From NCBI GenBank assembly GCA_963924565.1, contig OZ004612.1:14694001-14758000 (forward strand): DNA of 64,000 nt, read 5' to 3'. The DNA is from Ascidiella aspersa (taxonomy: Eukaryota). Of this stretch, positions 22,133-63,318 are shown one piece after another; the stretch's first letter is position 1; each line of letters opens with the position of its first letter. The position numbers and the translations under genes are program-made. Under the pieces are notes generated by a model. That model was not told the origin of the DNA. It made no database searches and saw only the letters and a list, made by a program, of their open reading frames with translations.

Positions 22133-22914
22133 ATGCGCGGTTGCCCCCTGTTGGCCTTGCTGCTCGCGCTCGTAGGCGTCATCAGCGCGCAGGCCACCTG
22201 GAATAGCGAATCGGAGTTGTCCATGTTCGCAACCAAGCAAAAGCAGAAGCCGCTGTACAATTCTCGCGCCTACGCTGTCGGGGAGGGCCTGGACGGCAGT
22301 GGCCCCTCCAACAGGTCTATGATGAGCGAGCTTGTGTCGCTTTCGTCCTACTTCTTTAACGGCATGGACGGGCAATTCGCTGAGTTTCCCGTTTGGGAAG
22401 CTGACCCGGTGGGTGGAGTTGGCAAGTCCCTCAGCCTATCCTTCCAGTTTCGCACTCAGCTCGAAAACGCATTTCTGCTCTACGTGGATGATGGCGGCGA
22501 CTTGAGCTTCCTTGCCGTCACGGTTACGAACCGCGCGGTGCGACTGCGCTTCAAGTTTGGCCTACCCAGAACCGTCGTCATCACTCTAGGCTCGAATCTC
22601 AACGACAACCGGTGGCACACTGTGCAGATCGAAAAGTCCTTTCCATCGGTGCGTCTCACCGTCGACGGGAGGTCGAATCAGCAGTCGGTTGCCTCTACCG
22701 GCGCCGCTCAAGACCTGTTGACGAGATCTTCCACCTATATTGGTGGTCTGCCCAGTAGCTATAAGATCGGCCAGCTAGCGCTGCCTTCCATCTACTTTGA
22801 GCGCAAGTTTGCCGGCTGGATGCGACAGATCGCTTTCAACGGACACTACGTTTCGCCCACCAGAAAGTTCGATGTGCTGGAACAGGTGGTCGACGAGTCC
22901 TGCAGTGAATTCAG
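22133..22914 (+). CDS. NRXN: Neurexin exon: signal peptide, N-terminal extension, LNS1
   Basis: gccATG Kozak context; [21 protein letters not shown]; [30 protein letters not shown]; donor AG|gttggt. Confidence 0.93.
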
Positions 22915-25900
22915 GTTGGTGAACGTTTTTTAGTGAATTATCGCAGTATAACTGCAACTATCGGTTTTCTGAAAGCGAGCACACCACCTTGTCACGTGAG
23001 GCAGTTATTAACTGTGATTTGCAGGAATCCGTGTCGCAACAACGGAGTGTGCTACAGACAGGGCCAGCAGACCGCTTGCGACTGTTCGGGGACATCTTTC
23101 TCCGGCCAATACTGCGACCAACGTGAGTGGACTATTGTGTGTGGCCGATACTGCCGGCTTGCTAGTTGATGTATATGCGCTTTGGACGTAGAAAAATTCT
23201 CGCTTTGACTGATTTGCAATTTGCGATTTAAATGCATGGCGGCCGGGGTGTATGGTGTGCACTCCGCAGACCGAGAATGTCCTGCGTTATTAGATTACTG
23301 CTGGTTATGTTATCATTCTTATTTTTGAATGAAACCTGAATTGTAATTGCTTGTTACAACCATTATGCAGATAGTTTTTGGTTGACGGAAAATTTTCAAC
23401 TAACCAGCCATTTTTAAAACATTTATTTAATCTGTATTTTATATGCAATGAGGCATACGCCACCGTATGCATGTAGCAGTAACCAGTAGTTCGTCAGTAA
23501 TAGCTTTGTTATTAACTACATTAAATGTCATTGTAAAATAGGTAGCCTAACCCATGTAACGTACAAAGTCATCACTTTTCATGTAGGCTGTATATGTCCA
23601 ATTTTAGCACTACCAATATGCGTATTTTCAAGTAGAAGATATAGGATTCAACAGCAGTAAAATCACGACTGAGCAAATTGCAACAGTAGTTCATCATTAA
23701 AACTTAACCGATGAAAACTGATTTTGTTAATTTATATCTTATAAAACATAACTGACATAATCAATTAACTCGGTTGTTTACGCGTTAGCGTACCAACTTT
23801 TCGATGCAATGATGAATGATGCCCCAGGTGAGAATAAATGTCCACATTGTGTACTAATCCCTTCAAAACGCTGACTCGTGGATTAATTATTATTTGGTTC
23901 CCGCAGGAACCTAACCACTTACTATAACTTAAAAATTACACTCTGGATACTGGTGATGCAGCATCCAGATTTGTGTACGCAAAAACAAACAAATACCCTT
24001 TTTCCATGATGCGTTTTTCCACAAGTCAGCGTATATATAATCCCTGTTTCGCTTATCACCTCATTTTACCATTCGTGATGTGGACCGTTCTTCCGTCATT
24101 CGCCCATATTGAATACAAAATATATACTTTTTTATGTGTATTTGTACAGTCCCACAAAAATGCCGATTGTCAAAAAATTGGTACGCCATTTAATCTTTTG
24201 AATACACTAACAGCGGTATTTTCCACCGATTTTAACCAACGTAGGTATAACTACAAAACTATTGCTAGCTTAAAAACTGGCCTTTAGTCAAAAGTAAGAA
24301 TATTTTGACAGAAACGAATGTATTTCTTTTTTCTGATGGATATGTGTTTGTACATTATACTGCAAGTAGGAAGGGGTCCGATAATATCGGATCGGAGTAC
24401 ATCCTTAATGGCAAGTGGTAGTATTGGTACTCGTCCAATAATGGAACGATATCGGTGCTGATCCGATACCATATTAACATAAGTGGTTCAGTCATAATTT
24501 GCTAATCCGACGCAGCAATTTCTACCAGAGGTTAACTAATAAAAAAAGCAAGTTATCAACTGAAACGCTAAAATGAATTTAGGCTTCATACGCGAAATAC
24601 ACAACTTTTACGTTTCAGTTTTATCTATTTTTCTCTTTGGGCATAGTAATGAGTTAATGGCATAGGTTTGGATCGGTTGGGATTACGATATTTTTGTCTC
24701 AAATATCGGGTATCTATGTATGAAAATAAGATGTCAATATCGGACAATGCTAATTTCAAGCATCAGTCTCCTAAAAGTCGTTCTGTATTTTCAGACGATA
24801 TATTGCAGTGTTTTTGCCTCTGTATCAAGGGAACGTCTACCACACTGTTTCTCTTTCCGCCGGGTTAAACAACAGATAAAGTAGATTTCGTTAAAAGGTT
24901 TGCCTCCCGGTTTAGATTGTGAAGCAGCACACGTACACCAGAGACTAGTACTCAGTGTGGCCGACAAGGTCAAGAGTTTGTTACAAGCCGATTGCTCCGC
25001 GATCGGTGATACTGATTTTTTGGTCAAATTCAATTTAATTCAATTACATGTATTTGTTTATATCGTAACAATCGAATTGTTAAAAAAAATCGTAACATGA
25101 CGATTTATTTAGATACTGTTCAGCATTTGCTTCAACATATTATCATCACTCCACAAATTTTAATAAAGTTTATAATAAGGTTGCGTAATACATTTTTTCC
25201 GTACAAAAATTTCATTTTTGATGTAGTCTCTAGCTTTTTTACATTTTGACAAATGAATGAACTTTGACTTAAGTCATTGACGCGAAATACGTGCCTTCAA
25301 GTGTTTTTAACATTTTTTGGTTAAATGAAGTACTCGCTGCTTGCTACAAAACATATCACTCATTATCTGACGAGTTCACCCGGTTTTAATAATTTAACAT
25401 TTTTGTTTAAATGTAAATTACTTGACTTCAACTAGACTTGTTAATTGTCAAAATGGTTTAACTTAAAATTAAGTTATTTTGCTAATTATCCGACTGGGAC
25501 TTGAGTAATATATAAAAGGACATGATAAGTACACGGCAAACAAACTATAATAGAAAAACATATGTTTCGTATTTATTTAACTCAAATGTATGTTAATTGT
25601 AGTGCTTTTTGCTTAGTCACACTTCTAGTAATTTTATTTTTCTGTTCGTCATGTCTGATTTGTCGTATTTATTTTGACATTTCTAAACCCGATGCTTTGC
25701 GCATTACAATACGCCAAATCGATATCAAATGACGTCATAATTACTTACCACGGTGTAATACTGTTGAACATACCCTTATATTATCTTCGTAATAATTAAC
25801 TGCTAACTTAATACCACTAATCACATGTTTATTGTTGTGTGTACATAATGCAACTTAAAAAAAAATATTTAAAGCCCAATGAGAAGTAATAAGCAACGCT

Positions 25901-28900
25901 TTCTATTGTAACACAATGCTTCCCGGAGCACAAATTGAAGTGCATTAAGACCCGGCGTAACAGTCCCAGAGAATCGATGGTCTCTCAAACAGTCCTTCTT
26001 GGCGTTCACGGAAAGCCGATATCGGAAAATTTTCGATAAGCGCGGCTTGATAACACTGGCTTGATTGGCAATCTGGCTGGTTCCATTAGTTCTCATAAAA
26101 GAAAAATAATAGGGCATCAATAGAAGTGAATGGTCAAAGGATACAATTGTTTCCAACCAACCGCTGTCAGCGCAGGTTTTTATCGATTTATTAATCCATG
26201 TAGGGTCAAGATGTAAACTCCAAAAAAACTTCAATAAATTAACCCGAAACACTCTTTGATGTGCGATCTTCCTGTTAACTTATAAACACAAAAAATACAA
26301 TTCTACCCGAGGGATTGTGCAAGTGTGCAAGGTTTCCGATTAGAGCAAAAGTGTATTTGGTCAAACCTTTTGTGAGTAAAATTTATATTTTCATTAATCT
26401 GAAAAGACTGTCGGTATCACGCAAAAAAAAGAATTACATGTAAATCCATAGTAAAAGCATATGGACTTTGTAGCTATGAACATATTATTAGGAAAGGTTT
26501 TATAGAAGGGTCGACCCACAATCGTAAGTTAAAGCGAGATAGGATTTTTGTCTTGCTATCTATCCTCGAAATACCAATATCGGAAATAAACTTGAGGAAT
26601 GACGTTTAAACGTCGCAATTACAGTGTGCAGCGCCCACCGCAATTACCCAATCGGCTGGGGAGCATTCAGCGAGTCCTCTTACAATAATCCCTCATGCAC
26701 GACCGCCGATGTAATTCCCACAGGAATACTGCCTACGAAATTCGAGATGCTATGACTTTGGGTCTGGCCCTGGCCTTGTAATTTCGTTCTATTTTGAGAA
26801 CCGCTCACGCTGTACGATGTTTGACAAATTTCCTTATTTGGTTAACATGTCGATTTCATTTCTTTTTGTAATCGGTTGTTTTCTTTAGATTTTTGTTTGA
26901 ATTTGTCCTGAATGCTTGTTTGTTCCTTCCATTGCATGTCTATTTTTGTCGTTTTGCTTATTTGTATGGTATTGCCAATCAAACGTTTTTCAAAATGTTG
27001 TCTCGCGGTACGCTGGGGTGACATTTCTAATGCCCATAAGAAATCTTTAGGAATCTTATTTATGCTCATTTGTAAGCCTCTTGATACAACCACTTGTGTA
27101 CTAATAGAGATAGTTGAATTAAATAAGTTGTTGAACGTGTGTTACGATCATAGTGGTGTTCCAACTATACGTTTATAGTAACATTGCAAAAAACACTCAA
27201 CAAGATTTCTAGTAGGGGGGCCTCAATTTTATTATTATTTTTTCTAAGGGCGCCATAATCCATAAAGTTTTTGTAGTTTAGTATGTTTCGAAATTTGTTT
27301 AGTATATTAAATAAGCGCTTTTTAATGTCATATATATATGTATTAAGATTTGGTTTGGAGCATGGTGGATTCTAATACAAGTTTAAAGGATTTATTGTCA
27401 CGAAATTTACGTAATTGCTGAAAATAATTTGAAACATTTTCCATGAAATCTAAAATGACTATATTATAAAATATGACAGCTTTCAATGAGGCCGTGGCCA
27501 TGTTCACCGGAGCGGAATGGCTCAAGTATGACGTGTCAAGCAATCCTGCCTCAAGTCTCAGTGACGTCATTTCCCTGTCGTTCAAGACCGCCCAACCAAA
27601 TGGACTGATCTTCCACACCGGTAAAATCACTTATCGTAAATTATAATTATTTGCTTTTAATTAAAAAAGTATTGACGGTCCCAAGTACCCTTAAACAACT
27701 GCTCGATATGTTCATTTTTGTGATATAATAATACTTATTTTTACATGGTATAAATCCGTGTCTTCTCAACCTAAAAAAACAGCAAAGTTTTTGGGACCAA
27801 GTGTTTTGTCAATGAACTTTTGTAAGGCTAATGTGAACAAAACACTAACAGATATACTATTAATAAGTTCGATGTATTAAATATAAGCCTGTCTTCTTAT
27901 TGATTTTGCAAATCTCTTGAATATATTTTTATCTGATTTATTTCTTTCAAAGTAGAGATTATGCTTAAAATGCAGATAACTATATGTACGCCACAGTAAG
28001 CATAAAGGTAGCAAGGAAAGGACAATTATAGGCTTTATATGGCTTAACAGCCATTTATAATTGCGGCTTCGGTAAAAGTAATATCGATTAATTTGCGATT
28101 CCTCTGTTTAGTTCATTGACTAAAAAGAGAAATGTCCCTCTGACCTCCGCTTTTACATTTTGTATTATTTTCGAACTAAAAGGCTTTTACTGCGTATGCG
28201 ATCGGGACCAAATCGCCAAAACTTGCTAAAATGCCGACAGGGATCGTCGGCTAAGCCTTGTGCCGAAGGGGCACCGTTGTTACGCGAAAAGCCAGCATGA
28301 AAATTACAATGGCAACAACAGCACCGCCTGTTGGGCGGTAAATGCACTTCTCATCAAACATGCATGCGCCTCCGAAAGAGCAACATAGCGCCTTGCATTA
28401 GCGTTGATAGAGCTGCAGTGCTCGCTTTAATTATTTTTATATTTTCTGTCGAGCGATGGGCCTCGTTCGATGTATAAGACCAATCCTCACCGTGTTACAT
28501 TTAAGTTATTCACGAAGTATTTAAACTATAGATTAACGTAAAGAATATACGTCTGTTATATTACTTGTTGTGTTTATAAGAACGTCAGATTTAGGGCGCG
28601 ATTTTAGTTTATTTCGTTTAACAAAACTAGCGGGAATCATATTTTAAAACAAATCTGTTTCGTGCAAAATGCTCAGTAAAAGCAAGTTACTAATATTATG
28701 GATTTATTTATAGAAAAATCAAAATACTAAAGATACGGAAGAACAATTTTTGTAATAAAATGTCAATCTATCTATATATTATTAGCGAAATAATAACATG
28801 TTAATTCTATTTATCAATGTAGCAAATGTCTTCTAATAAATTTGGTACGTAAATTTAAGTTAAACATATTTTTGTCGTGTGGTCTATTGTTAAAGTCCTA

Positions 28901-31900
28901 GCCTACACACCAAAGAATCTAGCGTGTGATTGTCAGACGGTCACTGTTTTGAAAAGCAACATTAAGTTTGCGCGCGCGCATTTCGACTTTAAAAACTTAA
29001 AAAGCATCGTACAAAAAGCATTCACTCCACAATCGATTTTCATTTGCTTGGCGCTCTTGCGCTTCCCCACTCCTGACCGTCCTATTCCAGCCTGCTCCTT
29101 CTACTCTCACTCTTCTGCTCCCACTCTTTGCTCCAACTCCTCATCGGGAGAAGCGACAATTGCTCGTCACCGTCTGACGCCGCGACGGAGGCACGGGCGC
29201 GTCAGGCCGACGAATATATTTGGCGGGTGTCGACTCGCGAAGGACCGGCGAAAGTTCGCCGCAAACACAACGCCATGAATTATTAAAGCCACCCTACCCC
29301 TCCCCCGGCTATCTCCCCCATTCCACATCCCGACCTCGCTGCTTTGCGGCAGACCTCCGGCGGTACGCAACCGACCATAGTCACGCCTGGACAGAAACAA
29401 CCGGCTGGATGAGCTGTGCAAGCTGGATTTTCTAAGACAAGTTAGCGGACATTGAATGAAATCTTGATTTATTCCAACCGAAAGCCTCGTTTGACCGCTA
29501 TTTGCGTTCTGACTCAAGACTGTTTGTTTCAACAATGCGAAGTCCATTATTTTAAACCTGTTGTTGCCATACATTAACGTTTGCGTTATAGCCTGCGAAT
29601 GCGCAAAAATCCAAGCAAGCTAACCTTTCCATCCGCAAGACTTCTTATGGTCTAGAATCATTTAACTGCGGTTTTCTAACAAGCTTCGTGCGACCACCAG
29701 GAGTGATTTCCAACTGTTCAAAAGTCCGATTTGTGGGTTGTGCGTTTATTCTCTTTCACGTTCGACCTGCGTGATTCTTTTTTAAAAGACTAAGACTGAT
29801 TGTTGTTCTTGGCTACCGAGGTTCTTATCCATTCAAATGGGAGTTGTGATGTAGGGCTTATCGATAACCGATTACAGAAAAGTTTCGCAATGTTCTTACA
29901 TTGGCCTTTCGCTTCTAGTAATTTTGACGCATTAACTTAACGATGTTACAAATTTCATAACAATTCATTAAAGCATTAAGGGTCGGTCTGTAAAAGGATC
30001 TTTGCTTCATAAAGAGCACTCTTTGCTTCATAAAGACATTTATAGATTTACAAATACGGTGCTTTTTATGTTGATTTTTATCACATGATTAGTATACTGA
30101 ATAACCTTAGTTGATTAAAATTTGTTATACATATATTTACTTCATCTATTCAAAATTAATCACAAACCGCGTTTTATGGTTATTTCAATTGATACATTAC
30201 AACCAGCACGAAATTTCGCTGAAAACGTGATTATTGCCGGCAGTATTTATTGAAAAGGGTATTTAAATAATTCATTATCTGGCCGGCCCAAAAGGATGAG
30301 CTGGTGCTCGCGACTGAACCTTTCGGACAAGCCTAGCAATACGCAGGTTTTCCTCAATACAAAAAGTACAAAGCGGGGTTGGGAAGTCCTTGTGGTTTCT
30401 TAGATGAGTCATGGCCGTGGCACAGTTTGAACTAATGGGATAGTTGTAAAAACGACAAACATGGTTGGAAACGCATAACTATATATTTAAATGCCAACTA
30501 TCCCTTTTATAACAATACATACGTTTGTTGATTTTGTTGGTTTTCTCACCATCTCGTTTAAAACCCTAACATTCTATTTGAATAAGATACTGATAATGCT
30601 TTTAGTAGCGAAATATATTGATCATATTACATCCAAACAAACTGATTTTCGGTTTACCAAGTTTTGTTCTTTCGGATTCAGGCAGATTCTGTTAATCGTA
30701 AGAAAAATTCTTATTTAAAACCCATTTAATAAACTTTAAAATGGGCATGTTATAAAAATGACAGCTTTCAACGAAGCTGTGGCCACGTTTACCTGAAAGA
30801 ACTGCCACAAGTATAACGTGCCAAGCATTTCCACTTGGTAATTTTTAGTATTAATAAGTGCCATGCGTAAAAAAACATATGAACATATGATATTACCAAA
30901 AAGGCTTGAACGTTCGTTTGAACCGAGTACGAGGTTTACTGAAGTGAATAATGTAGACATGTTGCGTAGTTTGGGATATTTCCAACCATTAGTAAACCGT
31001 AATCTCAACAAACGTGACAAAAATGGGAATCTTACTTTATTACCTTTATCAGTTACAAATGTCTTCCATTTAAGTTAAAAATCCGAATTGAAGTTACTAA
31101 CTAAAAGTTTACGATCAATAAAAAATCCTTAAATATTATTCCAGGCAAATCGGCGGACTTTGTAAGTCTCTCGCTTATGGAAGGCGGCGTCCAGCTTGTG
31201 GTCAACTTGGGGTCCGGGGCTTACAAGATCGACGTCCAGCCAAAAACCGGGAGACTTTTCAACGACGACAAGTGGCACCGTGTACAGATCAACAGGACCC
31301 TGCGAAAGGTAAATATCTCGAGTTTAACGTTTTTTAAACTTTCCAATCGTTAATTATTCTAATAAAATATAAGAAAATAATGTCTTATCGACTCCCAGCC
31401 GGTTTTATTAATCAGCCTCAAAGAAAAACCAAGTGTTCTGCTGTAGAATCGGTCCCCTCATCCAATAACGCACAAAAACACCTATACAATAATCACCTTG
31501 CATTTTTTTAATTTACGTCGTTTAGCACAACAGCTTAAGTTACCTATACTACACTCTAAATTTACCATTGTGACAAGTTGACATGCCAAGAGTTGTGTGA
31601 AACACTTGAAGATAAATACTCCAACCTTCACTAGTTAAAAATTTTTTTTTTTACTGTTAAAAAACATACGTAAAATAGGTTCGTCGAACAACAGTGCAAA
31701 TGTTCAATAAACCTATTTTACGTGTGTTTGTTTGTTGTCTTGCAGTTTAATTCGCCCAGCCTAAAAAAGCAGAGAACATCGTGACCCTACAACCAATTTA
31801 AAGTGATATATAGACATGCATAATAATAAATGACGTTGTCACTGCCTTGATTGCGTGAATCCCTACATTTTTCCCAGAACGAAACACATATGTATTTTAA

Positions 31901-34900
31901 CTTGAAATGTACAATGTCTGTTATATATTGATTTGACTGCTTATTTTGCCTAAACCATCTGATTAAAACCAAACAACCATGTAAAAACGATGTTTTATTT
32001 TTCCTCCTTAGAGAAGTGTTTGCATTTATATTTATTATCATAATTTATGTCTACGTAGATCTGTTCAATTTACGGTGACTGTGTTGCTTATATAAAGCAT
32101 TTAGTTTTAGATTTGCAGTTGTTTAATTGAAGTAGTTACGTCATTATTAGTGTCGTACATGTGCGTTTCAGTTTACATTCCTTTCCAGGCAAACAACAAC
32201 CATAAATATTCCCACTTTACTTGTCCTCCTTAACCTTAGGTAAGAAAGATTATATGCCACTTTTCAGTGAAGACCCATTCATTACGTTATATATAGATAC
32301 ATTACAATTCACTGCTTTAATCCATACAGGATACACGGCTTTAGTTTAATACCATACGAACCGGCAGTTAACCTCGAAGTGTCAATACTTTATTGTCACC
32401 CAAACAGGGCGATAATTGTTTAGCAGGACAACCAATCGCGTATGTTACTTCATATCTACGAGTTTAAACACTATAGTACTGTAACAATGAGGCTTTTCTT
32501 CTATCAACATAGAAGTGCAGTGGGTTATTTTTCACAGTTATCAATGGCACTTGTTCAATTTTAAAACAACAAAGGCTTCTTCAAACAGAATTGCTTTTTC
32601 GTGTAGAGTTAATTTATTCCCTAATTAGCATTGAAATTGACTTGCTTGCTTTCTTTGCTGGGGCTTGATGCAGACCAGAGACGACCCAACTCCGGCCATG
32701 GTAAAGCCCTACTTATCGCAGCGACCCCTACAGCTATCCACTATGTTGTTATCGGTATTCATCCTTCATCGTTATTCGTCCTTCACGGCGTCGCTACAGG
32801 GCGTCTACGGCGCGGTTTTATTTGGTTGCGTAGGGCGCTGACGCACGGAAATGGGGAATTATGAAAATATGTCTTTGTTTCTTAATGTAATGTGCCCTGG
32901 TACGCAAATAACCCACATGTCTTTTTCTTAATGTAATGTGCCCTGGTACACAAATAACCCTTAAATGATTGAAGCAGTTACCATGATAACAAACAATAAA
33001 CAAATGTACCCAACAGTTACACGAATTAATGGTGTAATGGATTCACAGCCCTGCTTAAAAATACGTTTGTATTTTCAAACAAAAAAAGTATATTTGCTCA
33101 TAAATTCCAGCGTTTCCGTGTTTCAGCGTCCACCCGCGCTGTCCGTAACATTGTCTTGCAACAATTTGTCTGAATTGGCCTGCAACAATGTTGTCCACGA
33201 TCCATGGTTGATATCGTTACGAGAGGAAAAAAAAGCCTGTCCTCGTTAGTGTTCTACGTTTGCAAACTTCCAAGCTTGGGTCGTCAATTCGATGTTCTGT
33301 TGTCATTGACGGTTGCTTCGTCCATAGACATCGTTACGCCTGCAAAACAATATACGTTGTTTGCGGTTCTGAAAGATGAAGCCGTAAAGCAGTTGTTATA
33401 CTTCAAAACTAAAAAAAACTAATTCCAAAATGCTAAATTCTCTGCCTGTATTCTCCCATAACAAGAATGGTAATAATGTAATAACTTTTTATTGATTTAT
33501 AGTGGAAAGGAGACAGACAGTCAGACGGACAGGCAGACGGACGGCCCGTTATCATAACGATTTTTCTCATGGCAAACTGCAATTCTCTCTAGATTTAATT
33601 GATTTATTTTAAAAGTGATTTTGTCCAGGGTATTTTTTGTTGGTTATTGGTTTTCGTTTAGCCAGCTTAAATCTGCTGCCAAATAAGAGCCTAAACAGCA
33701 ATGCCATAAAATACAGAAATGGTTTAAAAATAATATCAACAACGCTGTGTGCTTTGTGTAAAGTCGGCTTGTCATGCGAAGAACTCGTTATTTGTGGCTT
33801 TATAAACGCCCTAACGTCTGAAACGCTAACTGAGTTTAACGCTTGCTTTACGCGCTTGTTATCGGTGGTCGGGCTCAGCCATGTTCGGTTATCGCAAGCC
33901 GTCGAGGTGTATGTTTTCCCACAAGCTAACCCTCCCTTGATAAAGCCTCATTATTATTACCTTCAAAACTACGTTGCTCTGTAATCCCATGGAATGTAAT
34001 ATTTAAAGCCCAGAAAGCCATTTGCGTGACACTGCCATTCCGTTGGTTGAGTAACACAATATTTCTTTTTCCCACTCCCCCAGGCATCTATAATTCATTA
34101 ACAATTCAAAGGCTGCGCGTGCTTACATCAGAATACGTTTTAAGGGTATAGAGAACTAACGTTTTTTCTGAGCAATGGCGTAACTCGTCGTTTTATCACA
34201 ACTGCAGTTTAACAATTAAAAATGCTAATTTTATTTTTATTTAGAACAAACGAGGGTTACTTTATTACTGTGTTTAATAAATTTATTTTTACCGTCTCCG
34301 ATAACATTAAGTACAGCAACATAATTTGAAACTCGATAATAGTGATGAACAAATATATAAGATATTAAAAAAATAATTGCAGTAACAAAACTTAGCGATT
34401 TATGCCGATATAGTGAATTTAAACTTTACTATACAGTTAAACCATATTTAGCTTTGTGACATTATTGTGCTTACTCTGGCCATATAGCGCCCCCTACAAA
34501 AATATTAGAAATGAATAAGCATATACCGTTTGGGCTTCTGATATTGCGTTTAAGGAACATGAATGGCGGCAATCATGACTATCTTTGTACATTGACGCGT
34601 TTGTGACCACTCACCAGAGACAGGGCATATGCTGCATAAGAATCAATATAGATAAACTTTACCCGCATTCTACGTTGCGCTCAATAATCTCCTAAATGTC
34701 GACATTTCAATCTATATTTAATCGAAATTTTACTGCGTAAAGCACTTGTCGTGTTTTTTTTTAATCTCACCTATCTTTCAAGAAGCACCCAAAAAAGAAA
34801 AAGGGCATTAGTCTATAGGCGTCTGAAAAAAGGCGTTTCTGATGGGGACAACATTTGTGTGTGGTTGTGGCAACCAGGTCACCAAACATTGCACAACCTG

Positions 34901-52900: not shown

Positions 52901-55900
52901 TGTATTTCCTCCCTCCCTTTATTCTTTATAGATCTTCTATAATCTTTGCTTGTGTAAGGTGGTACACTGATTACGGAGTAAGGATTACCTACACCGACGA
53001 CTGACGTAGAGTGTTCTATTTCTATACATTGATCAAATATGTTTTTGAAAAAAATTACATATTTTCAAGGATGCTTTGATTTGTCCTATTGTGGTTGTTC
53101 ATTTTCTTGTTTATAAACACCGAAAAAATATGTAAATAGTCATATTCGCTATAATATGTTATTTCGCAAAAAAATTATCAAGGTTTACGCAAGTTCACCT
53201 TTATTTAAATCAGTGTATAGTTTCGTAATATTAGCTTTTACTTAAGCCTCGTAATATTAGCTTTTACTTAAGTTAGCCTATAGCCCTATACGGACCCGTC
53301 TGCCGTATTGAATTAGGTAGGGTGAACGTTTAGATATGGTGTTTGGCTGATTTTTGCTATATGTGGCAATTGTTTTTTTTTGTATATGGCTGGTTTTGCT
53401 GCTTTTATGAATTTGTCAAAAAGCATTAATCTGGCTTTGCTAGCAATTGCATGAAACTGCATAAAAGAATTACATACTTTTTTCTCGATTGGAACAAACG
53501 ATTTGCTTAAACCGGTTGATTCACGATTGTTCGGAAATAAAATGTGTATGAAAACCTTAAAACCTGTGAAAATTTGTATGTTTAAACAAACCCTAAAAAT
53601 TTTGTGATTAATGCAAAAAAATTATTTTTTTGCAAAAGGGAATGTTTTAGAAACTAGTTCTTTTAGCTGAATCATAAAGTAAATGACGATTGTTTTGTGA
53701 AACGACCATTGACACTGGCCTCTTGTGTAGTGCAACACATTGATGGATACTTGCTGTAAAGCTCAATAAAAATATAACCTTACCCATCATCCCACTGCTG
53801 TCCCGGTGATTTGGCCGCCTTACCACGTACAATTGAGGCGATTTTGTTTTCGCCAAGGCCAACTTTCTACCTTGTTTTCTGTACGACTTAGACTTCACCC
53901 ACAAACGCGGTCATAAATATTTCACTGGGATGAATTGGAAGTGGTGATTTATTTGCCGCACGTCTCTTGCATTATTAAGAACAGCATAAGGGGGAGTTGC
54001 GGCTAAACGCTACACGTGTATCTTCGCTTAGCACATCCGTCAAAATGCGGTCCAGTCATGCCGGGCATTTTTCGCCTTGAAAAAACAGGTTTTATTATCT
54101 CGACTGTCATGAATATTTTAACCGCCGTAAAAGCCCAGGGTAAGTTTTTCGACCTTCGCGGTCAAAAAAGGCGATTCGCAGATATTGCGCAGTGCAGCCA
54201 CATGTTGACGTTATAAAAGTGCCTTTCTGTTGGTCCACATCGCAGTTAATAATTCAAGGCACGTCGATTAAAACGGGTTTAATAGTCTAATGCGACAGTT
54301 CGGCTATCGGTGACAGTTTTATTGGGCCCTTCAAGTGTCGCGTAGGGCGCCTCGTGACAGCGCAGATGTAAAACTTTATCCAACCGCCATTGCAATAAAA
54401 AGTAAATTCAGAGCAGCCTCCGTCAATCTTAAAAAACGTATTTAGACGCTCTATAATAAGACATTTTTGCGAATATTTATACTTAATAGTCTGTAGTTGG
54501 GAAGTCCTTTCTGGCACTTTTTTCCTTAGTCGACCGAGTTGCAATTTAAGTGTTATTTTTTATCAATAAAACTAGGACAAATTCTGCTCGAAAAGTAAAC
54601 ATTATAACGGTTCATAACAAAATATATATAAGAACAAAGTGTAAATCTATAGTGTTTGGTTTAAAGTTTCGACGGAAAACACGTTTGAAGTTAATCTATT
54701 TTATTACAAACTTTACTGTCCTGGTCTACGTCTGTCTGTCGCTCACAACACCATTTTTACGAGATCCGTTATGTTTACCAACCACGTATTTACGAAAGCG
54801 CGTTTTTAGTTAGTTGAGTATAGGCCAAGCATAATACTCTTCTATGATAACTTGTATCCGAATGTTTTTTTTAAGAACCGTTGACCGGGCGATTCACCAA
54901 ATTGGAATTCGACTCTATCTATCTTGCCAAGTTTGTTCCGACCTTAGCAGGACGAAACCAGTCACAAGCGACACGGTCATTTGCAGGAGTCCTTCAGAAT
55001 GTTGTTTTCAATTCAAATTACCTCATTGACAGGTAAACTTACAAAAATGTATGTCTTACAGTGAGATATCCGATATAGGGCATTTTTTGCAATGTCGATA
55101 TTCCGATAAAATTTACGGTTTAACTTATTACAAAGTTTTACAAATTAGGTTCAAAATTCGTTACATTGAGATGCGCAAATTCCATGTCAGCATGATTGTT
55201 TGCTATAGTTTACTTAAGCGTATATAAAGTATTTTTCATTTATTTGTAAACTATATTATTGACGAAAATGAATCCAAAGTAAAAAACGCTACTATAAATG
55301 ACAAACCGTACTTTAAATTTGGTAACAGATCTGGACACTAATCAAGGAGGAGTGTCGATACTACAACTGGTATCGGGTATAGACTCGATAGTATTGGGCA
55401 TTCCTAAACAATTCACAAGGGTTGGGTAATTCGTTTAACCAAATTAAATTTCGTTTTTACAATCTCGCAATTGAAATGATCACCCCGACATGCCTCTCGA
55501 AAAATAAGTGTCAATGTTTAAATAACTTGTAAAGACCAGCTGCTTACTTATAACACCGTTCCCCTAATATGCGATTCCTTTTGTCAGAATTCAGGTATTG
55601 TTTTCCAAACTGAAGGCAAACTTTAATTACATGTTAATCTTGTTATGTATTTAGCTGCTGGGATCGGACTTTAAACTGCATACAGAACACAACCTGGGGT
55701 GACACATTTACAGTTGCCAATCCGGTTACATTCAAGGGAGCACAAAGCTACATTGCAATGCCAACGCTCAATGCATACACGTGAGATAATTGTATTTAAT
55801 CAGCTTGTCGAAATATCTAACTTTAACGAGGTGGCAACATAAATAATTAATTTGAATATTTGCCCGAGCCGTGCTGCTTTACTCGCTTAAAAGGCTTATT

Positions 55901-58900
55901 ATTTGTAACAGTATGTATAGTCCACGCTAGTTCAATGTTCTTACAAAAAGGTGTTGTTTAATATTCCCGAATACTTTTCTTTGATTAATTTATTTCATTT
56001 ATAATGTGACCATGCCTTATGGTTTACTCCTGTGAATAGCGGATTTCGGTTTATTCGCTTAGCATGATTGTTTTGCAATGTGACAGGTCGATGTCGCTGT
56101 TTATGAGCATCAAGACTATTGTTATGGACGGGTTGATTCTCTACAACGGTGGCCCTAGCGGCGATTTTATTGCCGTCGAACTTTCGGGAGGCCAAGTCTT
56201 TTACATCTACAACTTAGGGAACGGTCCTCAAGTAAGCAAAATATTTATACATATGCACATGTGACGTATCAGTCCCGCGGTCATTTTTAAAATAGATGTT
56301 TAGAAGACAAACTGAATAGTTCATACTGAACTTTGTTTGGTTTGCACGGTCTATCATTGTCATTTACCACTGTGCGTTTTACTGCTTGCACAGCCTCAAT
56401 TTTTGGTACATATTCGGCACATTACTGTCAATCTAACACAGTGATTTACAAACTTTTTCTTGTCGCGTCGACCTATTAGCTTTTTACAGTTGCTGAGCAC
56501 TGCTACTGTTTTTGTTCGGCTAAAGTTAAGTTCAGTTAATTCAATTTATTTGATCCATAAACTAGTGTGACGATCCGAACACTGCTCGTTTACCACCAGG
56601 AAAGCCCACATGTACCACTAGAGGTGCGTGAATCACAGCTTGAGAATCCTTGCTCTAACATAATAACAACGATTTTAAATCGTATACTATATACGGCAGC
56701 ACAACAAGCACAATTTTTTGGACAGCTTCGCTTATACCGGTGACACTTCGTTCAAAAAGCAAGCGCTGCCAAAATAAAGGCAATCATTTGTAGTTTTACT
56801 AAAAAACTTGCAATTAGGATGCTTCTTTTTACCACAAATGTGCATGTTAGGTTTTGACTGTGCCGGAGAGTGCTGCCGTGAACGACAACAAGTGGCACGA
56901 TATTCGCGTGACCAGATCGAGCCGGAACGTTCATACGCTTACTGTTGATGGAAAGGCGATCAAACAGACAGGACTCGAACAAAGAAGACACTTGGACCTA
57001 AATGGTAGCGTTTAATTGAAACGACGTGATGCCATCACAATTGCTAACAACCGCGTCATTTCGTCTGATTAGAGAATTATAAGTAGATTTAGCCCAAGAC
57101 TGACTTGGGCCAAGTAAAAACATTTACAGCCAAATACTACATGTCGATTCGTTTTGAATATGAATTTATAGTAAAACGCATATAAACTGTGAGCATTGCT
57201 ATTTAAAAATATAAATCATCAGCTGTCAATAAGTTGCGCTTCTGCCTAGTTTGACCAACTAAAAAACATTTTTGGACACATGTTGTTATGAATTAGTGTT
57301 AGGTAGTTTTGCTTATGTACTACTACTTTGTAGGTTACTTCTACGTTGGCGGTGTCAGTCAAATCATGTACTTAAACGACCTACCGGACATTGTTGCGTC
57401 ACGAACTGGATTCCAAGGTTGCCTGGGGTCACTGGAGGTCAATGGCAATCTGCAGGACTTGCGAAACCAGCAGGGAAAGATCACAATCGGAAAAGTGGCA
57501 GCCGGTTGCCTAGGTAAGAAAAAATAAATGCCGTTTAAGATAATTAATTTATTGTGTAAACGAAAAGCGTTAAATGCCGAAGAACGTACAGAGTATTATT
57601 GTATAAGTTTACGGGGTTTGGTGCATTTTGCATTATATTTGGTGTAACAATTTTTTAATGGCTTATTCCCTGTAGGCCTACCGATTGTTTTTTTTTAATT
57701 AAAAATGTCGAAGCTTCTTCTTTAAAATCAGTAAAAAAATTGTACAAGCATCAGAGACATAGTGGAGTTTGCTTCATGTCAGCTGTTTTTTTCTTGAGTA
57801 AAATACTTTTCGTTTAAGTTGTTTGCAATACCAATAGCAAAGTAGGTTATCAATCTAAAAGTTCAAATATTTTACAACGTAAAACCAATTCACCTTATAA
57901 ATATTTGCTTAGCCAATAATTTGGAAGAAACGGCTCACGTTTTAATATATTTTTAGTCTGCCTATAGCAAAAATTTACTTGGTCGGTGTTCCTTTCACAC
58001 CCTTCCATTATAGCCCATTATAGCAAAGTGTTTTTAATAAGCTTGTACAATCTTGCGGCCGCTTGATAGACAGAAAATGTTTTTTGGAACTATATCCCGC
58101 AGCATATTAGTTATATGTAAGTCTTTAACACTGGATCATGAATGCGGTAAAATATGTACAGATGTGTCCGCTTAACATTTATGGTTTTATGCCATTTCTA
58201 CGTTATATGCTTGAAAGCTAAAACAGTTTAGGTAGCAAGGAATCTCCCGCAGACAATAAAATGTAAAAGAAAGATTCTTGTTTTCGTATCAGATAATCTT
58301 AAACTGTTTATAAAAACAGATAAAACATAAAATCATTCCTTAAATTTTAACAGAAATATATATTTCGCCTATAAGGCATTATCAGTTTCTTAATTCGAAT
58401 TAATCTTCATTCGAATTGATTAATATGCTTGAATGCATTTTTTTTTCTTTTTGTTATAATTTTTAAACGTTACCCTTCACCAATAGCCCCTTCTCCACCT
58501 TGCACACCCACTACGTGCAGCAACGGCGGTGTGTGTCTGCAACAGTGGGACGGATTCAAGTGCGATTGCAGTCTCACCGCATACGTAGGAAAGCTCTGCC
58601 AACAACGTGAGTTTGGACACCGTTTAACTGACATGCAAATAATTAATTATTTGAATTGTCCGTGTTTGATTCCATTTTAACCGTATTGTGAGCTCGGATT
58701 AATGTTTGGAACTATATGGTTATAGGTAAAATATTATTCCTTTTCAGAAACTGATAATAATGTTAATCTGTTTAAAATGTAAAGAGGGTGCATTTTATTT
58801 ACCAAATCAACACCCTTGCTAATATTTCCAACAGTTTTTCTTGTCAACGTTTAAGCAATCGCCTATCACGGAAATCACAGCTGCTAAATTTGTAACTTGA

Positions 58901-61900
58901 AATCGATATTTAATTAAAACACCATTCAGATTGGTTGATGATAAATAAGTAACGCAAGTTTGTGTTAAATTTTTATTGATTTTGCTCATTAGACGAATAA
59001 TTTGGTGAAACGTGTGATGTACTCGATGTATGACTTTGCCATGACATACCATTATATAAATGTATGATGGTTTTTCAAAATACGAATGCGCATGAATTAT
59101 AATACGAAACCTTTATCAATATATTACTTTGATGTTTAATTTTTTTTTTATCTTAAAAAAATCTGCCTGCACGTTGTATTATATAAAAGGTGTACATCTC
59201 ATATTCTTTAAATTATAACGAGGTATTAGAGCAAGCCAATTTTAGACGTTAGTTCATCCAAGAACAAAACTCTCAGAAGGAAAATAACTTAAACGAATAA
59301 ATTATATTTTATTGTTTCTTTCCATTTAGACGTCAGTAAACTGCCCGGTAAGCAAGAGTGCTGTTTTGCTCCCAAAGTAACCATAATGTAGTTTCCAAGC
59401 TGAGTGCTGTGAGATACTGCTCTGAGCGCAGCGCTCGGACGACGGACTAAAAGCATGCAAAATTCACTACAACGTTAATTTTAAACAAGCATATTTTTAT
59501 ATATTATAGTTACATAAAGCCTTCTCGTTGACTTTCGCACAACTCGAGATGCGAAGCACGTAGTTTTATATATTTTGTGCTATGCACCGCGAATGTTTCA
59601 CCACGCTCGCAGTCTCTAACAAATGAAAAAGTTTTTTTTTTCGTTTAGCATTTGCTTTACAGCGAATGCGAAGTTATCCAAAAATTGTTTTCTGAACGTT
59701 AGTTTTATTCACTGCTTTCAATTCTTCCCAGGCAACATTGAATATATGTTGTTTGGCGTACTATTTTGATTTGCACAATGTGTACTGTAGTGTTTGTTTT
59801 ATTTCTGAAAGGTATTACTGAAAAAGGGATAAAATGTAGAGAAATGCAAAAAATGTTAATTGTATTACGATTGTATCATCAAAATTCCTCAGCCAAACCA
59901 CACAAACAGATGTTAACAAAACATTTTTTTTAATTAAAAAACAGGTTTACACCCTGTTGTTTTAGTGAGCTGCAAAAGTTTCTGTATAATACATTTATCG
60001 ATAGGTTTACGCAAACTGAATGCATGGTGTATTATGTCCGCATGATTTGCATGATGACCTATATGAGGATTTTACATTTTTTATTTTCAGAAATATTATT
60101 AAAAATCGTGTGTGGAAAATTTGGAAAACTAAATGGCCTAGCTAGTATGACTGTTCAATAAGCTATAACTTGCTGCCACTATCCAAACCACTGTTAACGC
60201 ATGCTACCATAGTTGTTTACTAAGTTTAAAATTGACTCCTTTTATCTTACTTAGATAACAAAAATAAAATTCTAGTGTTTTCATTCAAATGTAATTCGTG
60301 AGCCGAATGTTGACTACAATTTTGGTTCGGGTTGACAAGGCTGTAAAACCTTAGAAAAATCATTTAAAATATCCATCCTTATATGTCACCCACTGCACAC
60401 TAATGCCGTTCTGACCGAGTCCCTTACCACTGTTGAATTTACAGGAGGTAATAGCTACAAGTTTGGGCCTGGCGCCGGCCTTATGCTTTACAAATGGCCC
60501 AATACGTACCCGAGCACGCGCTCGGACCGCTTGGCCCTCGGCTTTTCGACGTCACTACGAGATTGCGTCATCCTGAAAGTGACCGGGTACACCGAGGCCC
60601 CCGCACAGGACTTTCTGCTCTTGGCCATCGTGAGTCCGCTTAAAAGTCAAGCGCGCGATTCATAGCTCTCAGCTGTTAGTAGGTTGACGTGAGCAAATAC
60701 CCTCACTTTACACACCGTGGTAACCATTCGAAACGAACTGCCCAGGCGTGCATTTCATGCGTTTTTAAAAACTGCTTCGAAATTTGAGCAGGCGTTTTTG
60801 TTCCGCCAACTAAACAGCATCCCCAGAACTACGAATCGCGCCCGACGAATTTCAACCTTTACTTACCACATCCTATTTATATTTTATTTTCATAATTTGC
60901 TCGCAAACCGCGGCCGCCAACCGTCAGAACTCTCCTCAAAGACTACCTACCGCTTCGACCGCGGAGTTATGGTGTTTCGATTTCCATCGCCGTTGCGCAG
61001 CGTTCGCTCAGACGTGCTGACTCTTGGTTTTGCCACCAGGGCTCGGAACTCTCTGCTGGTTGAGGTCGAGTCGGCTATGCGCCGGCCAAAGGACTTCCTT
61101 CGACTTGCCATAGTGAGAGGCGCGCCCTGGCGTGTTGGCTTGCTTCTGCTGCGGCGTGGCTGTGTGTGTTCTGGCTGTCGTCACCAGTTGTGCAAGCGTC
61201 ACAATGCCGAGTGCATGGGTTTTACTTCTCTAACTCGAACCGTTATGGATTACATCTTGTCGTTTCCCCCGTGTGTGTCGGTACTTGCCTATGGTTTTCA
61301 TTTTGAACGTGTTGCCTTAAAGTTCGACTGAAATGTTAACATCCTTCATTTGAATATCCATAACTCAAGCAAGTTTTTGTACATCTGGAGATAACCTCAG
61401 TTTGTGCCTGCATTTTTTCCTTTTGTTAACAAAAGAATGTCGATTGGTTTTTTGATGGCCATGTAAATCATTGTACGTTCGTTCAAACTAACATGACCAG
61501 CTCTTCTGGCAGTGTGGGATTTTCGACCTGTCTTTTTGTCGAAGCTTGATTGTTGAAAGAGTTTTGTTTTTCGGTCCCTAATCGTTTTAAAACGTTCTAC
61601 GGCGGCCTCGGTTTGCGATTATATCGTAAAATCATTGTAATGCCTAAGCATTGAATATTTATCATAGTTTTTTTACAATATTTTACTTTAATTTTAATAT
61701 CATGTAAAACATGCTTAGAATTCGGAGATATTTTCTAAAATGTCTGCAAAATATAATAAAACCCATTTTTGAGGCCTTTTTCGCGTCAAGTTTTTAACAT
61801 ATTGTTATAAGTTGCTTGAAACCGATAAAAATAAGCGGATGCATAAAACAGTTTTATTTTTAACACTCGATTGATTAGTTGGATTCGTAGAAACACTGCA

Positions 61901-63318
61901 GCAACTGACGTGAGACAATTGGCCTTTCACTTGCTAATGGGTTTTAATGGCTTCGGGATGTTAGTGGAATCGCTTTGTCTTAAACGTTTGGCAGAAACCC
62001 GAAGTCAATATGCTCCCTTCTACTAGCTGTGAACCTTGTTGCACTGACAAACCTTTTTTTGTTCCTTTCACAAGGAAAACGGCAAGCTCATTCTTCGTTT
62101 TAACGTTGGTGGAGCGAGCGACGTGGTGCTGAGAGAAGGAATGTCCGTTTCGGACGGAAGCTACCACACTGTGCAGGTGCGCCGCCAGTGGCTGAACGCC
62201 ACCATGCGTGTCGACAATTGGCCGGTCAGAAGCGTCGCCCCGCCCGGTAAGTTGGTCACGTGATGTTGATGATACAAATAGTTACGTTTGTGTAACGTCG
62301 AGTATTTAAATAAACAGAAAAAGTAAAATCGACGGTTTGATTTTTTTGAAGATTTGAAATATACGTGTTTTTCTATTGTTGTAAAACTAATTTACTAGAA
62401 AACAAATGGTTGTTGACGATTTTTAAAATCCAAGTTTTTGGAAATATTATAATTAACAACGTTAGTGTGCTACAATTTGGTAAAAAGTTATTATTGGTTT
62501 CTATTTTCACCTTTGATTATACTGCCTAAAAAGAATATGAATAAAAACCTTGCATTCTGACCGATAGTTGTACAATTTGCATGTGCATTTTACTTAACGT
62601 TCATCGTTTTCAATAGCAGCAGTAACATAACCATCATTTTAGCTGTTTATCCCGTTAACCTTAACCAACAACCATCACCGCTCTGTAAAACGATGTGTGG
62701 CCTGTTTCTCTCGATGCACGTGAATACTAACGATTTCATCCTAACCGAATGGCATAGCAGGAACGCAGTAACATAAACGTCGTAACAACCGGTCTTGGTG
62801 TGCTGGCGGGAAGGTGGCCAAAATAATTCCACAATAGAAAAGACTCACCGGACAAATTTGGTTAAATTGTTTACCGTTTAAAACACGAAATGTAGAGCGG
62901 CACATGATCATTTTTTTTAATCATATCATGATCCTACGTTTGCAATACAAAAGCCCCGCCAATTATGTTAACGCTTTATTAACAACTTAAAACACCCGAA
63001 ATCCATTGTCAACCACAAGTCTCAGGTCCCCTGATAAACGCGAACAGTCATTAATAATGTTAAGTCTAATTAGTGAACAATTATATTTTCCAAATTAAAA
63101 AAATGACTCAGACGACATAAACTCTTGTGTAAATTCAATTTCATCTTGCTCCTATGGAGCTTGTCTCCAAAACCCAATAACAAATTTGCTCTCCCCACGG
63201 TTCCTTCTTTTATATACGTTTCTTGTTGTAGGGGATGCACGTTCCCGCTTTGCTCGCGTGATACCCTCGATAGCTTCCCCTGCCCGTCCCACCATTGATA
63301 AGTGGTTGCAACGCAAAG
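22133..63318 (+). CDS. NRXN: alpha-Neurexin, 5' part (signal peptide, LNS1-EGF1-LNS2-LNS3-EGF2-LNS4-LNS5-EGF3-LNS6 partial); continues beyond the window
   Basis: 20 phase-consistent backbone exons (3739 nt to 62246, using LNS6 exon A) with neurexin-specific motifs [89 protein letters not shown]. Confidence 0.96.
23025..23122 (+). CDS. NRXN: Neurexin EGF1 exon
   Basis: [32 protein letters not shown]; donor gtgagt. Confidence 0.95.
23789..23827 (+). CDS. NRXN: Neurexin SS1-like 39-nt cassette exon (predicted)
   Basis: cgcgttag|...|gtgaga, phase 1-1, no stop, [13 protein letters not shown]; resembles vertebrate SS1 GLAHLMMGDQ. Confidence 0.65.
27480..27620 (+). CDS. NRXN: Neurexin LNS2 exon a
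   Basis: [46 protein letters not shown]. Confidence 0.95.
30735..30837 (+). pseudogene. Degenerate partial duplicate of LNS2 exon a with its upstream intron flank (pseudo-exon or poison exon; exon part 30765-30837)
   Basis: 51/67 nt identical to 27480-27546 without indels; acceptor tgacag retained; GGA changed to in-frame TGA at 30794-30796. Confidence 0.85.
31145..31308 (+). CDS. NRXN: Neurexin LNS2 exon b
   Basis: [55 protein letters not shown]. Confidence 0.96.
32674..32700 (+). CDS. NRXN: Neurexin SS2 27-nt microexon (possible longer form to 32754)
   Basis: Phase 0-0 TRDDPTPAM|gtaaag at the SS2 position; UGC-rich upstream intron; second in-frame GT at 32755. Confidence 0.75.
32869..32960. 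repeat. ~45-bp tandem duplication downstream of the SS2 microexon
   Basis: ATGTCTTT(G)TTTCTTAATGTAATGTGCCCTGGTACRCAAATAACCC present twice. Confidence 0.9.
35243..35410 (+). CDS. NRXN: Neurexin LNS2 exon c
   Basis: [56 protein letters not shown]. Confidence 0.96.
36316..36537 (+). CDS. NRXN: Neurexin LNS2/LNS3 junction exon
   Basis: [18 protein letters not shown]...VQFACAK...PVSFITPES...[11 protein letters not shown]. Confidence 0.95.
36972..37079 (+). CDS. NRXN: Neurexin LNS3 exon
   Basis: [36 protein letters not shown]. Confidence 0.94.
37761..37883 (+). CDS. NRXN: Neurexin LNS3 exon
   Basis: [41 protein letters not shown]. Confidence 0.93.
38143..38307 (+). CDS. NRXN: Neurexin LNS3 exon
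   Basis: [55 protein letters not shown]. Confidence 0.94.
44979..45294 (+). CDS. NRXN: Neurexin EGF2 and start of LNS4
   Basis: [33 protein letters not shown]...SFDGTQHM...EDISLRFRT. Confidence 0.96.
45870..45962 (+). CDS. NRXN: Neurexin LNS4 exon preceding SS3
   Basis: [31 protein letters not shown]. Confidence 0.94.
46226..46255 (+). CDS. NRXN: Neurexin SS3 30-nt microexon
   Basis: tacag|...|gtaagt, phase 1-1, [10 protein letters not shown] versus vertebrate SS3 DCIRINCNSS. Confidence 0.9.
48033..48152 (+). CDS. NRXN: Neurexin LNS4 exon following SS3
   Basis: [39 protein letters not shown]. Confidence 0.95.
50538..52013. mobile_element. Non-autonomous hAT element (~1.48 kb) with a second hAT-like left end nested at 50862
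   Basis: TIRs CAGTGGTTCCCAACC / GCTTGGGAACTACTG; perfect 8-bp TSD CACTAGAT at 50530-50537 and 52014-52021; GGACCCC subterminal repeats; no transposase ORF. Confidence 0.9.
53223..53272. repeat. 24-bp tandem duplication
   Basis: TCGTAATATTAGCTTTTACTTAAG present twice. Confidence 0.85.
54876..55032 (+). CDS. NRXN: Neurexin LNS4 exon
   Basis: [52 protein letters not shown]; phase 1-2. Confidence 0.92.
55655..55780 (+). CDS. NRXN: Neurexin LNS4/LNS5 junction exon
   Basis: [41 protein letters not shown]; phase 2-2. Confidence 0.92.
56087..56231 (+). CDS. NRXN: Neurexin LNS5 exon
   Basis: [48 protein letters not shown]. Confidence 0.95.
56439..56652. mobile_element. Degenerate hAT MITE in a neurexin intron
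   Basis: CAGTGATTTACAAACT ... GCTTGAGAATCCTTG; TSD ATCTAACA/CTCTAACA (7/8). Confidence 0.65.
56851..57004 (+). CDS. NRXN: Neurexin LNS5 exon
   Basis: [51 protein letters not shown]. Confidence 0.95.
57334..57513 (+). CDS. NRXN: Neurexin LNS5 exon
   Basis: [42 protein letters not shown]...VAAGCL. Confidence 0.95.
58487..58606 (+). CDS. NRXN: Neurexin EGF3 exon
   Basis: [39 protein letters not shown]. Confidence 0.96.
59330..59347 (+). CDS. NRXN: Predicted 18-nt microexon between EGF3 and LNS6
   Basis: attgtttctttccatttag|ACGTCAGTAAACTGCCCG|gtaagc; phase 1-1; encodes HVSKLP. Confidence 0.65.
60445..60629 (+). CDS. NRXN: Neurexin LNS6 first exon, variant A (canonical-like; mutually exclusive with B)
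   Basis: 185 nt, phase 1-0; [35 protein letters not shown]...QDFLLLAI|gtgagt. Confidence 0.95.
60646..60866 (+). promoter_or_regulatory. Predicted intronic pre-mRNA stem with adjacent putative branch point between LNS6 exons A and B
   Basis: 60653-60669 pairs with 60825-60841 (15/17 Watson-Crick); 60672-60680 pairs with 60809-60818; TACTTAC at 60860-60866. Confidence 0.65.
60928..61112 (+). CDS. NRXN: Neurexin LNS6 first exon, variant B (divergent tandem duplicate; mutually exclusive with A)
   Basis: 185 nt, phase 1-0, open frame; [36 protein letters not shown]...KDFLRLAI|gtgaga. Confidence 0.88.
62075..62246 (+). CDS. NRXN: Neurexin LNS6 second exon (precedes SS4)
   Basis: [57 protein letters not shown]. 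Confidence 0.96.
63232..63318 (+). CDS. NRXN: Neurexin SS4 cassette exon (87 nt)
   Basis: Long pyrimidine tract then tag|; phase 1-1; [29 protein letters not shown](G) versus vertebrate SS4 ...RVVDEWLLDKG. Confidence 0.88.

Follow-up and report, generated by a model that had tools for sequence, protein, structure and literature searches.

In vertebrates, neurexins are encoded by three genes (NRXN1 to NRXN3), and their splicing at splice sites 1 to 4 (SS1 to SS4), above all at SS4, decides the postsynaptic partners. The loops of SS2, SS3, and SS4 lie along the ligand-binding face of their LNS domains, SS4 switches partners, and LNS6 binds neuroligin-type partners. When this system originated is a real question, and we approached it through the alpha-neurexin gene in a stretch of 64,000 nucleotides (nt) from the ascidian Ascidiella aspersa (contig OZ004612.1, here C6, positions 14694001-14758000 of a 308.6-Mb assembly; about 37% G+C and no N), which we call the window and whose own positions are used below. 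An exon homologous to the AS4 (SS4) exon of mouse Nrxn1 is described in sea squirt and lamprey, and as absent in fly and sea urchin, in the passages of Uvarov et al. (2014, PMC3933685) cited here, which do not address SS1-SS3.

We read the region as this ascidian's single alpha-neurexin gene, carrying cassettes at the vertebrate sites and two ascidian-only devices, namely, a microexon in the hinge between EGF3 and LNS6 and a pair of alternative exons, A and B, for the beginning of LNS6; we assign this reading a probability of about 0.8. The gene lies on the + strand, as do all exons given below, and runs from 22133 to the end of the window. Its first coding exon (22133-22914, GT after 22914) holds the start codon, a signal-peptide-like N terminus, and LNS1 (a laminin G domain, Laminin_G_2, E = 2.1e-22). 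The solved structures that it matches best are those of neurexin-1-alpha, and a phmmer search of 1.84 billion representative proteins, 897 of which reached an E value of 0.001 or lower, placed a Phallusia mammillata "neurexin-3-like" protein of 1654 residues at the top (E = 2e-95), residues 24-249 of which the exon matches at 51%. A start at 22097, belonging to a bacterial-code open reading frame, was dropped for the ATG at 22133. The gene thus begins upstream of 23789, the first position of the stretch singled out in the preliminary description of this DNA, and the ATG is followed by an EGF1 exon (23025-23122, flanked by AG/GT and ending in phase 1; 73% to Phallusia residues 249-281).

Within the window, the exon-by-exon match to Phallusia residues 24-1289 is ordered and collinear, and Laminin_G_2 and EGF Pfam matches on single exons give the domain order of vertebrate NRXN1-3 (LNS1-EGF1-LNS2 ... 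LNS5-EGF3-LNS6). The membrane segment and cytoplasmic tail lie beyond the window, at C6 14761296-14762027, in one open frame with 54% identity to Phallusia residues 1416-1654. In all, about 27 exons encode the usual set of six LNS domains and three EGF domains. All searches were made exon by exon, and over the exons aligned in this way identity was 732/1166 to Phallusia (62.8%), 566/1089 to Ciona (52.0%), 408/942 to Clavelina, 290/688 to amphioxus, 348/879 to coelacanth NRXN1a (39.6%), and 305/816 to Ptychodera. By this measure, the nearest relatives of the gene are ascidian neurexins, with Phallusia closest among the references. A six-frame search of the genome with the Phallusia protein returned 25 matches (such counts being lower bounds), 21 of them in one collinear stretch at C6 14716151-14762027; the remaining four, on other contigs, were weak (E = 1.8e-5 to 3.2e-4). 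We read this as one neurexin locus in the 308.6-Mb genome, over which the matches to the Phallusia protein extend for about 46 kb, against three genes in vertebrates. That the sequence might be a divergent vertebrate paralogue has nothing in its favor beyond membership of the neurexin family, and the ascidian proteins at 62.8% and 52.0% versus the coelacanth at 39.6%, the single locus, and the restriction of the hinge microexon and the A/B pair to ascidian sequences make it extremely improbable; we rejected it. The preliminary description was therefore right to take the gene for a nonvertebrate one, and the number of paralogues, which it had left to be counted, comes out as one.

Exon bounds were set from the frame of the tblastn match and the nearest AG or GT, and all were then checked jointly. 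AG and GT flank every exon, and the phases carry through without conflict from the ATG as far as SS4. The six features that had been proposed from the letters alone, four cassettes at SS1-SS4, a hinge microexon, and an A/B switch, were all recovered at or near the places first given for them, with cassette lengths of 39, 27, 30, 18, and 87 nt (SS1, SS2, SS3, hinge, and SS4), all multiples of 3, and 185 nt for each of A and B. As a rank control, we scored every open AG..GT candidate with a length divisible by 3 in each intron against the Phallusia and Ciona inserts. There were 137 such candidates for SS1, 144 for SS2, 51 for SS3, 41 for the hinge, and 27 for SS4; open AG..GT segments are thus common in these introns, and frame preservation alone means little. 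At SS1, SS3, the hinge, and SS4, the proposed cassette ranked first against both the Phallusia and the Ciona inserts. The SS2 candidate ranked first of 144 against the Ciona insert and fifth against that of Phallusia, which makes SS2 a plausible but the least secure cassette.

We then compared the cassettes with the vertebrate sites in two successive alignments of full-length neurexins, the first with 46 sequences and the second with 36, drawn from ascidians, fishes, lizard, bird, platypus, coelacanth, amphioxus, hemichordates, starfish, and protostomes. At SS2 and SS3, the columns in which Ciona isoforms show insertions or deletions are the ones in which loach or gar NRXN3 isoforms show them, and at SS1 and SS4 the ascidian inserts share columns with vertebrate inserts that are absent from lizard and chicken NRXN3 isoforms. 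Peptide similarity was expressed as the number of shuffles, out of 1000, that reached the observed score. The SS3 cassette (30 nt, 46226-46255, phase 1-1, AG/GT) is identical to Phallusia in all nine of its full codons and falls in the vertebrate SS3 columns, where the vertebrate insert is one residue shorter. It has the two-cysteine pattern and the phase-1 junction of vertebrates, giving Gly if skipped and Asp if included, and Gly is indeed found at the skipped junction in Ciona isoform X8 and Clavelina isoforms X4 and X7. Its score against the coelacanth insert was marginal (44/1000). The SS4 cassette (87 nt versus 90 nt in vertebrates, 63232-63318, phase 1-1, AG/GT) has 19 residues identical to the Phallusia insert and occupies the columns of the 30-residue vertebrate insert, with which it shares scattered residues, an end motif, and phase 1; 0/1000 shuffles reached its score against gar NRXN3 and 60/1000 that against coelacanth NRXN1. 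An SS3 or SS4 insert was found in none of the nonchordate sequences of the alignment. On these comparisons, SS3 and SS4 are homologues of their vertebrate counterparts, and the motifs and phase-1 junctions that they have in common argue for an origin before the tunicate-vertebrate split and hence before the vertebrate genome duplications.

SS1 and SS2 require a more guarded reading. The SS1 cassette (39 nt, 23789-23827, phase 1-1, AG/GT) is a frame-preserving exon in the EGF1-LNS2 linker that falls in the vertebrate SS1 columns. In the window and in Phallusia, it has a two-methionine motif in common with vertebrate SS1; the similarity to vertebrates is marginal and not significant (75-123/1000), and that to Phallusia reaches 3/1000. 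If it were skipped, the junction residue would be Pro, which is what Ciona isoform X10 has. We consider SS1 probably homologous to the vertebrate exon. The SS2 candidate (27 nt, 32674-32700, AG/GT) lies in the LNS2 loop, in the columns of the vertebrate and Ciona inserts, with phase 0-0 (phase 0 as in vertebrates), and is as long as the 9-residue Ciona insert that isoform X5 is without. An open frame continues to a possible distal in-frame donor, which would add 54 nt (32701-32754, GT after 32754), again reminiscent of the second donor of vertebrates. In a newer Ciona model (P0291), the SS2 insert is long, with 9 + 17 residues, and resembles use of such a donor; the similarity of the 54-nt extension to those 17 residues was not above chance (432/1000). 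As it stands, SS2 matches the vertebrate site in position and phase only.

Part of the agreement with the vertebrate sites, at SS2 and perhaps at SS1, might be convergent, with cassettes arising repeatedly where surface loops and linkers tolerate inserts and introns already existed. Several results weigh against a common origin of all four sites and lend themselves to such an explanation: the SS2 peptide showed no significant similarity to the vertebrate inserts (115-117/1000) or to those of Ciona or Phallusia, and the single amphioxus model has none of the four inserts. SS2 is weakened further by a second candidate in its intron, 33503-33547, which scored highest against the Phallusia insert; it is of GACA/GACG-type low complexity with a weak donor, and we judged it the less likely exon. 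Locust and barnacle proteins carry an insert in the SS2 loop that looks unrelated, so SS2 may be older, or recurrent, and isoforms of Ptychodera and Asterias vary at the SS1 position with segments unrelated in sequence. Convergence does not sit well with the cysteine pattern, near-equal length, and Gly/Asp junction of SS3, with the gar score, phase, and length of SS4, or with the methionine motif that SS1 has in the window, Phallusia, and vertebrates, and we regard it as unlikely. Of the idea that the whole SS1-SS4 code predates the vertebrate duplications, with residual peptide similarity at each site, the part concerning SS3 and SS4 holds for age and that concerning SS4 for similarity; similarity is marginal at SS3 and SS1 and not above chance at SS2, where homology may be read from position. 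The protein alignment across groups, where the preliminary description had foreseen one of exon structures, places the ascidian and vertebrate inserts in the same columns and leaves the amphioxus model without them.

We then looked at the isoform models of other ascidians. The 90% cluster of the Ciona intestinalis protein comprises 16 sequences, of which 15 were listed and 14 aligned (a 249-residue fragment was left out); 11 RefSeq X-isoforms of Ciona and 9 of Clavelina lepadiformis were compared. The Ciona models differ at SS1 (five variants, X2, X4, X7, X9, and X10), and single models are without the 9 SS2 residues (X5), SS3 (X8), the 6 hinge residues (X6), or 29 residues of SS4 (X11); A is used in 2 of the 11 and B in 9. 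Those of Clavelina differ at SS3 (X4 and X7), in the first exon of LNS6 (X3), and at SS4 (X6), and further by an extra LNS4 cassette (X5 and X7), loss of EGF3 (X8), and the C terminus (X9); they show no SS1 or SS2 insert. The Ciona and Clavelina genes and the Phallusia protein are orthologues of the A. aspersa gene and have its set of variable segments, among them the hinge microexon, A/B, and SS4. Some segments differ: Ciona has a second SS1 cassette, for which nothing convincing was found in the window, and the extra LNS4 cassette of Clavelina, of 19 residues, has no match there. From the models of these two ascidians we infer alternative use of SS1, SS2, SS3, the hinge, and A/B in A. aspersa. 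In our literature searches, no paper turned up that deals with SS1-SS3, the hinge microexon, or A/B exons of tunicates; the SS4 exon of sea squirts is already published, and the other events are implicit in public automatic isoform models and apparently undiscussed in print.

The hinge microexon (18 nt, 59330-59347, phase 1-1, AG/GT) encodes six residues that are also present in Phallusia, Ciona, and Clavelina. Among the aligned sequences the insert occurs in these four ascidians only and in no nonascidian, vertebrates included. Its site differs from that of an insert present in two fish isoforms at the border between LNS5 and EGF3, which we take to be vertebrate SS6 and which has no counterpart in the ascidian gene.

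The first exon of LNS6 exists in two versions, A (60445-60629; 64% to Phallusia) and B (60928-61112). Exon A is orthologous to the A-type exon of Ciona (score of 183 versus 67 for B) and also to the Phallusia A exon, and exon B has its orthologues in the B-type exon of Ciona (115 versus 88 for A) and in Clavelina, where it corresponds to the alternative exon of isoform X3 (100 versus 59 for A), so that the duplication is older than the split of these ascidians. Joining A to B would bring a stop at the 31st codon of B, and leaving out both would bring one at the 9th codon of the next exon; a transcript must therefore take one of them and only one. Either exon would supply the first 61 residues, or first third, of LNS6, and conservation of both versions among ascidians suggests two binding specificities. 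At the start of exon A, two AG acceptors lie 3 nt apart (60445 and 60448), and the choice between them adds or drops one residue. The arrangement recalls insect Dscam1, in that tandem exons of equal length, one of which is used, swap part of a binding domain; it differs in that the ascidian gene has two copies only and that the reading frame, at the least, accounts for their exclusivity. Since no aligned sequences other than those of ascidians have the hinge microexon or the A/B pair, these are, as far as these sequences go, lineage-specific additions of ascidians, and the independent elaboration in this lineage that had been supposed is borne out by these two devices.

For RNA evidence from A. 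aspersa, twelve runs were listed, one of which is recorded as RNA (run X8, raw reads); another, run X3, is of unknown kind and has spliced contigs. We compared runs X8, X4, X3, and X12 with 6000 bases from EGF3 through the exon after SS4 (locus L002, whose position 1801 is window position 60201), a stretch downstream of SS1-SS3. The exon after SS4 lies just beyond the window, its acceptor 11 bases past the end, at L002 5611-5796. One run X3 contig (depth, 4.6) joins L002 3845/3846 to 5610/5611 with GT..AG, linking the donor of the second LNS6 exon (62075-62246; ends in phase 1 right before the SS4 position; Laminin_G_2; 79% to Phallusia) at window position 62246 to the exon after SS4. SS4 is skipped in this contig, and the skipped form thus exists. 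Another run X3 contig ends at the end of the post-SS4 exon and continues for 242 letters that start with the next downstream exon, which indicates that run X3 holds spliced RNA. Alternative use of the cassettes, as first proposed, is accordingly seen at SS4 through this one skipping contig; the other sites fell outside the stretch compared or gave no joints. The 96 ectodomain isoforms calculated at the outset are an arithmetical figure that would hold if the sites were chosen independently within single molecules.

The small exons could instead be constitutive in this species, or unused, dead relics, in which case the structure would be conserved and there would be no splice code. A number of results count in that direction and against the use of the cassettes that we propose. 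No X8 read or X3 contig included SS4, at very low coverage, and at no site did the reads show the two forms side by side; about 6% of run X8 yielded 18 reads on the 6 kb, the first mates all on the minus strand, with no joint above the listing threshold. The Ciona and Clavelina isoforms are automatic models, and in the Phallusia protein all of the inserts, at SS1, SS2, SS3, the hinge, and SS4, are present together. In the cited passages of Uvarov et al. (2014, PMC3933685), no Ciona expressed sequence tag is without the SS4 exon, the exon is proposed to escape skipping in that animal, and skipping is suggested to have evolved in early vertebrates. Their AS4 exon is the SS4 exon of the window, and its distribution agrees with our alignment; as to skipping, their statement on Ciona contrasts with the one skipping contig of A. 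aspersa and the two RefSeq models without SS4. Moreover, the Ciona and Clavelina models both include and skip the orthologous segments, open frames and peptides that are conserved across ascidians speak against relics, and A and B cannot both be constitutive. We therefore hold constitutive exons or relics to be quite improbable and retain the reading of alternatively used cassettes.

Reads of run X8 over EGF3 fell in bins 1-400 of L002, on the EGF3 exon (58487-58606; ends in phase 1; 79% to Phallusia). A few others lay in introns, at L002 1801-2000 (window 60201-60400, just upstream of exon A), 4001-4400, and 5001-5400; they are too few to tell whether they come from unspliced RNA or mark an exon or start that is not annotated. 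Run X4 covers the SS4 exon and both of its intron flanks, like low-coverage DNA, and run X12 gave nothing. Run X4 is labelled as a different organism and has near-identical pieces of the neurexin locus, introns included, which raises a question about either the label or the species boundary. A word search with the second LNS6 exon for short transcript-derived proteins over the A/B or SS4 junctions found no candidate, a blank made uninformative by length limits and the word index.

A possible regulator was found elsewhere in the genome. UWAA motifs are reported to be KHDRBS response elements in mouse, where this family controls SS4. For Ciona intestinalis, Ehrmann et al. (2013, PMC3636136) reported the lack of a KHDRBS homologue. 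In A. aspersa, we found a KHDRBS-like (Sam68/T-STAR family) gene at 27462079-27465150 of another contig (C4), with a Qua1 domain (27463579-27463650; 45.6 bits, above the Pfam cutoff) and an RG-rich stretch downstream. The best structure matches of its Qua1 and KH exons were KHDRBS1 and KHDRBS3 (E = 2.3e-14 and 8.7e-9), with SF1, Quaking, and GLD-1 ranking behind them. The motif counts give this gene no help as a regulator of SS4: UWAA is not enriched next to SS4 (79th and 67th percentiles of the gene's 200-nt windows), and counts of UWAA, YCAY, and GCATG beside the cassettes showed no enrichment worth reporting. A link between the KHDRBS-like gene and SS4 is only a possibility.

The remaining exons complete the gene within the window. 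LNS2 is encoded by exons at 27480-27620 (61% to Phallusia; AG/GT), 31145-31308 (Laminin_G_2, E = 1.4e-10; 67% to Phallusia; ends in phase 0 right before the SS2 position), and 35243-35410 (63% to Phallusia; AG/GT), and LNS3 is encoded by four exons at 36316-36537, 36972-37079, 37761-37883, and 38143-38307 (tblastn, 48-78% to Phallusia; Laminin_G_2; AG/GT). An exon with EGF2 and the start of LNS4 (44979-45294; EGF domain; 73% to Phallusia) is followed by the second (45870-45962; 68% to Phallusia; AG/GT; ends in phase 1 right before the SS3 position) and third (48033-48152; 69% to Phallusia) LNS4 exons. The end of LNS4 and LNS5 lie on exons at 54876-55032, 55655-55780, 56087-56231, 56851-57004, and 57334-57513, set by tblastn against Phallusia, with AG/GT and consistent phases. 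At the start of the third of these, two in-phase AG acceptors lie 24 nt apart; 56063 was dropped as the main site because 56087 fits the Phallusia protein without eight extra residues, and it may be an alternative that adds them.

The border of the 6.7-kb LNS4 intron (48153-54875) is the place of the 19-residue cassette difference among Clavelina isoforms and of a 7-residue difference among Ptychodera and Asterias isoforms, and it is not among the vertebrate sites visible in the alignment. The intron held nothing convincing for a cassette of the Clavelina or ambulacrarian type. Beyond the end of the window, Ciona X13 and Clavelina X9 have a short alternative C terminus without stalk, membrane segment, and tail. 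Upstream of neurexin and on the same strand, as the preliminary description had said, exons for the N-terminal and middle domains of OST48/DDOST are found near 4187-7088.

As for function, each cassette would alter a loop or linker and leave the fold undisturbed by inclusion or skipping, since its length is a multiple of three and its phases are symmetric. SS2, SS3, and SS4, inside LNS2, LNS4, and LNS6, would add or remove a short loop, and by homology a position of these loops at the ligand-binding face, with partner switching by SS4, is likely in ascidians as in vertebrates. We put at roughly even odds the proposal that one gene carries a two-layer code, made of inherited SS1-SS4 cassettes, with SS4 truly skipped, and the hinge microexon and A/B pair peculiar to ascidians. 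If it is true, the A/B pair, conserved in Ciona, Clavelina, and A. aspersa, would let a single gene supply either of two ligand-binding domains; no such device is known to have been described for a neurexin, and it is a new way of varying LNS6, the main ligand-binding domain. Skipping of SS4 in ascidians would correct the inference of 2014 on its origin. A single-copy ascidian gene with cassettes at the four positions, two of them clearly homologous, dates SS3 and SS4, at the least, to before the split of tunicates and vertebrates. The ascidian, a simple chordate whose nervous system is small, offers a setting for testing the role of the splice sites.

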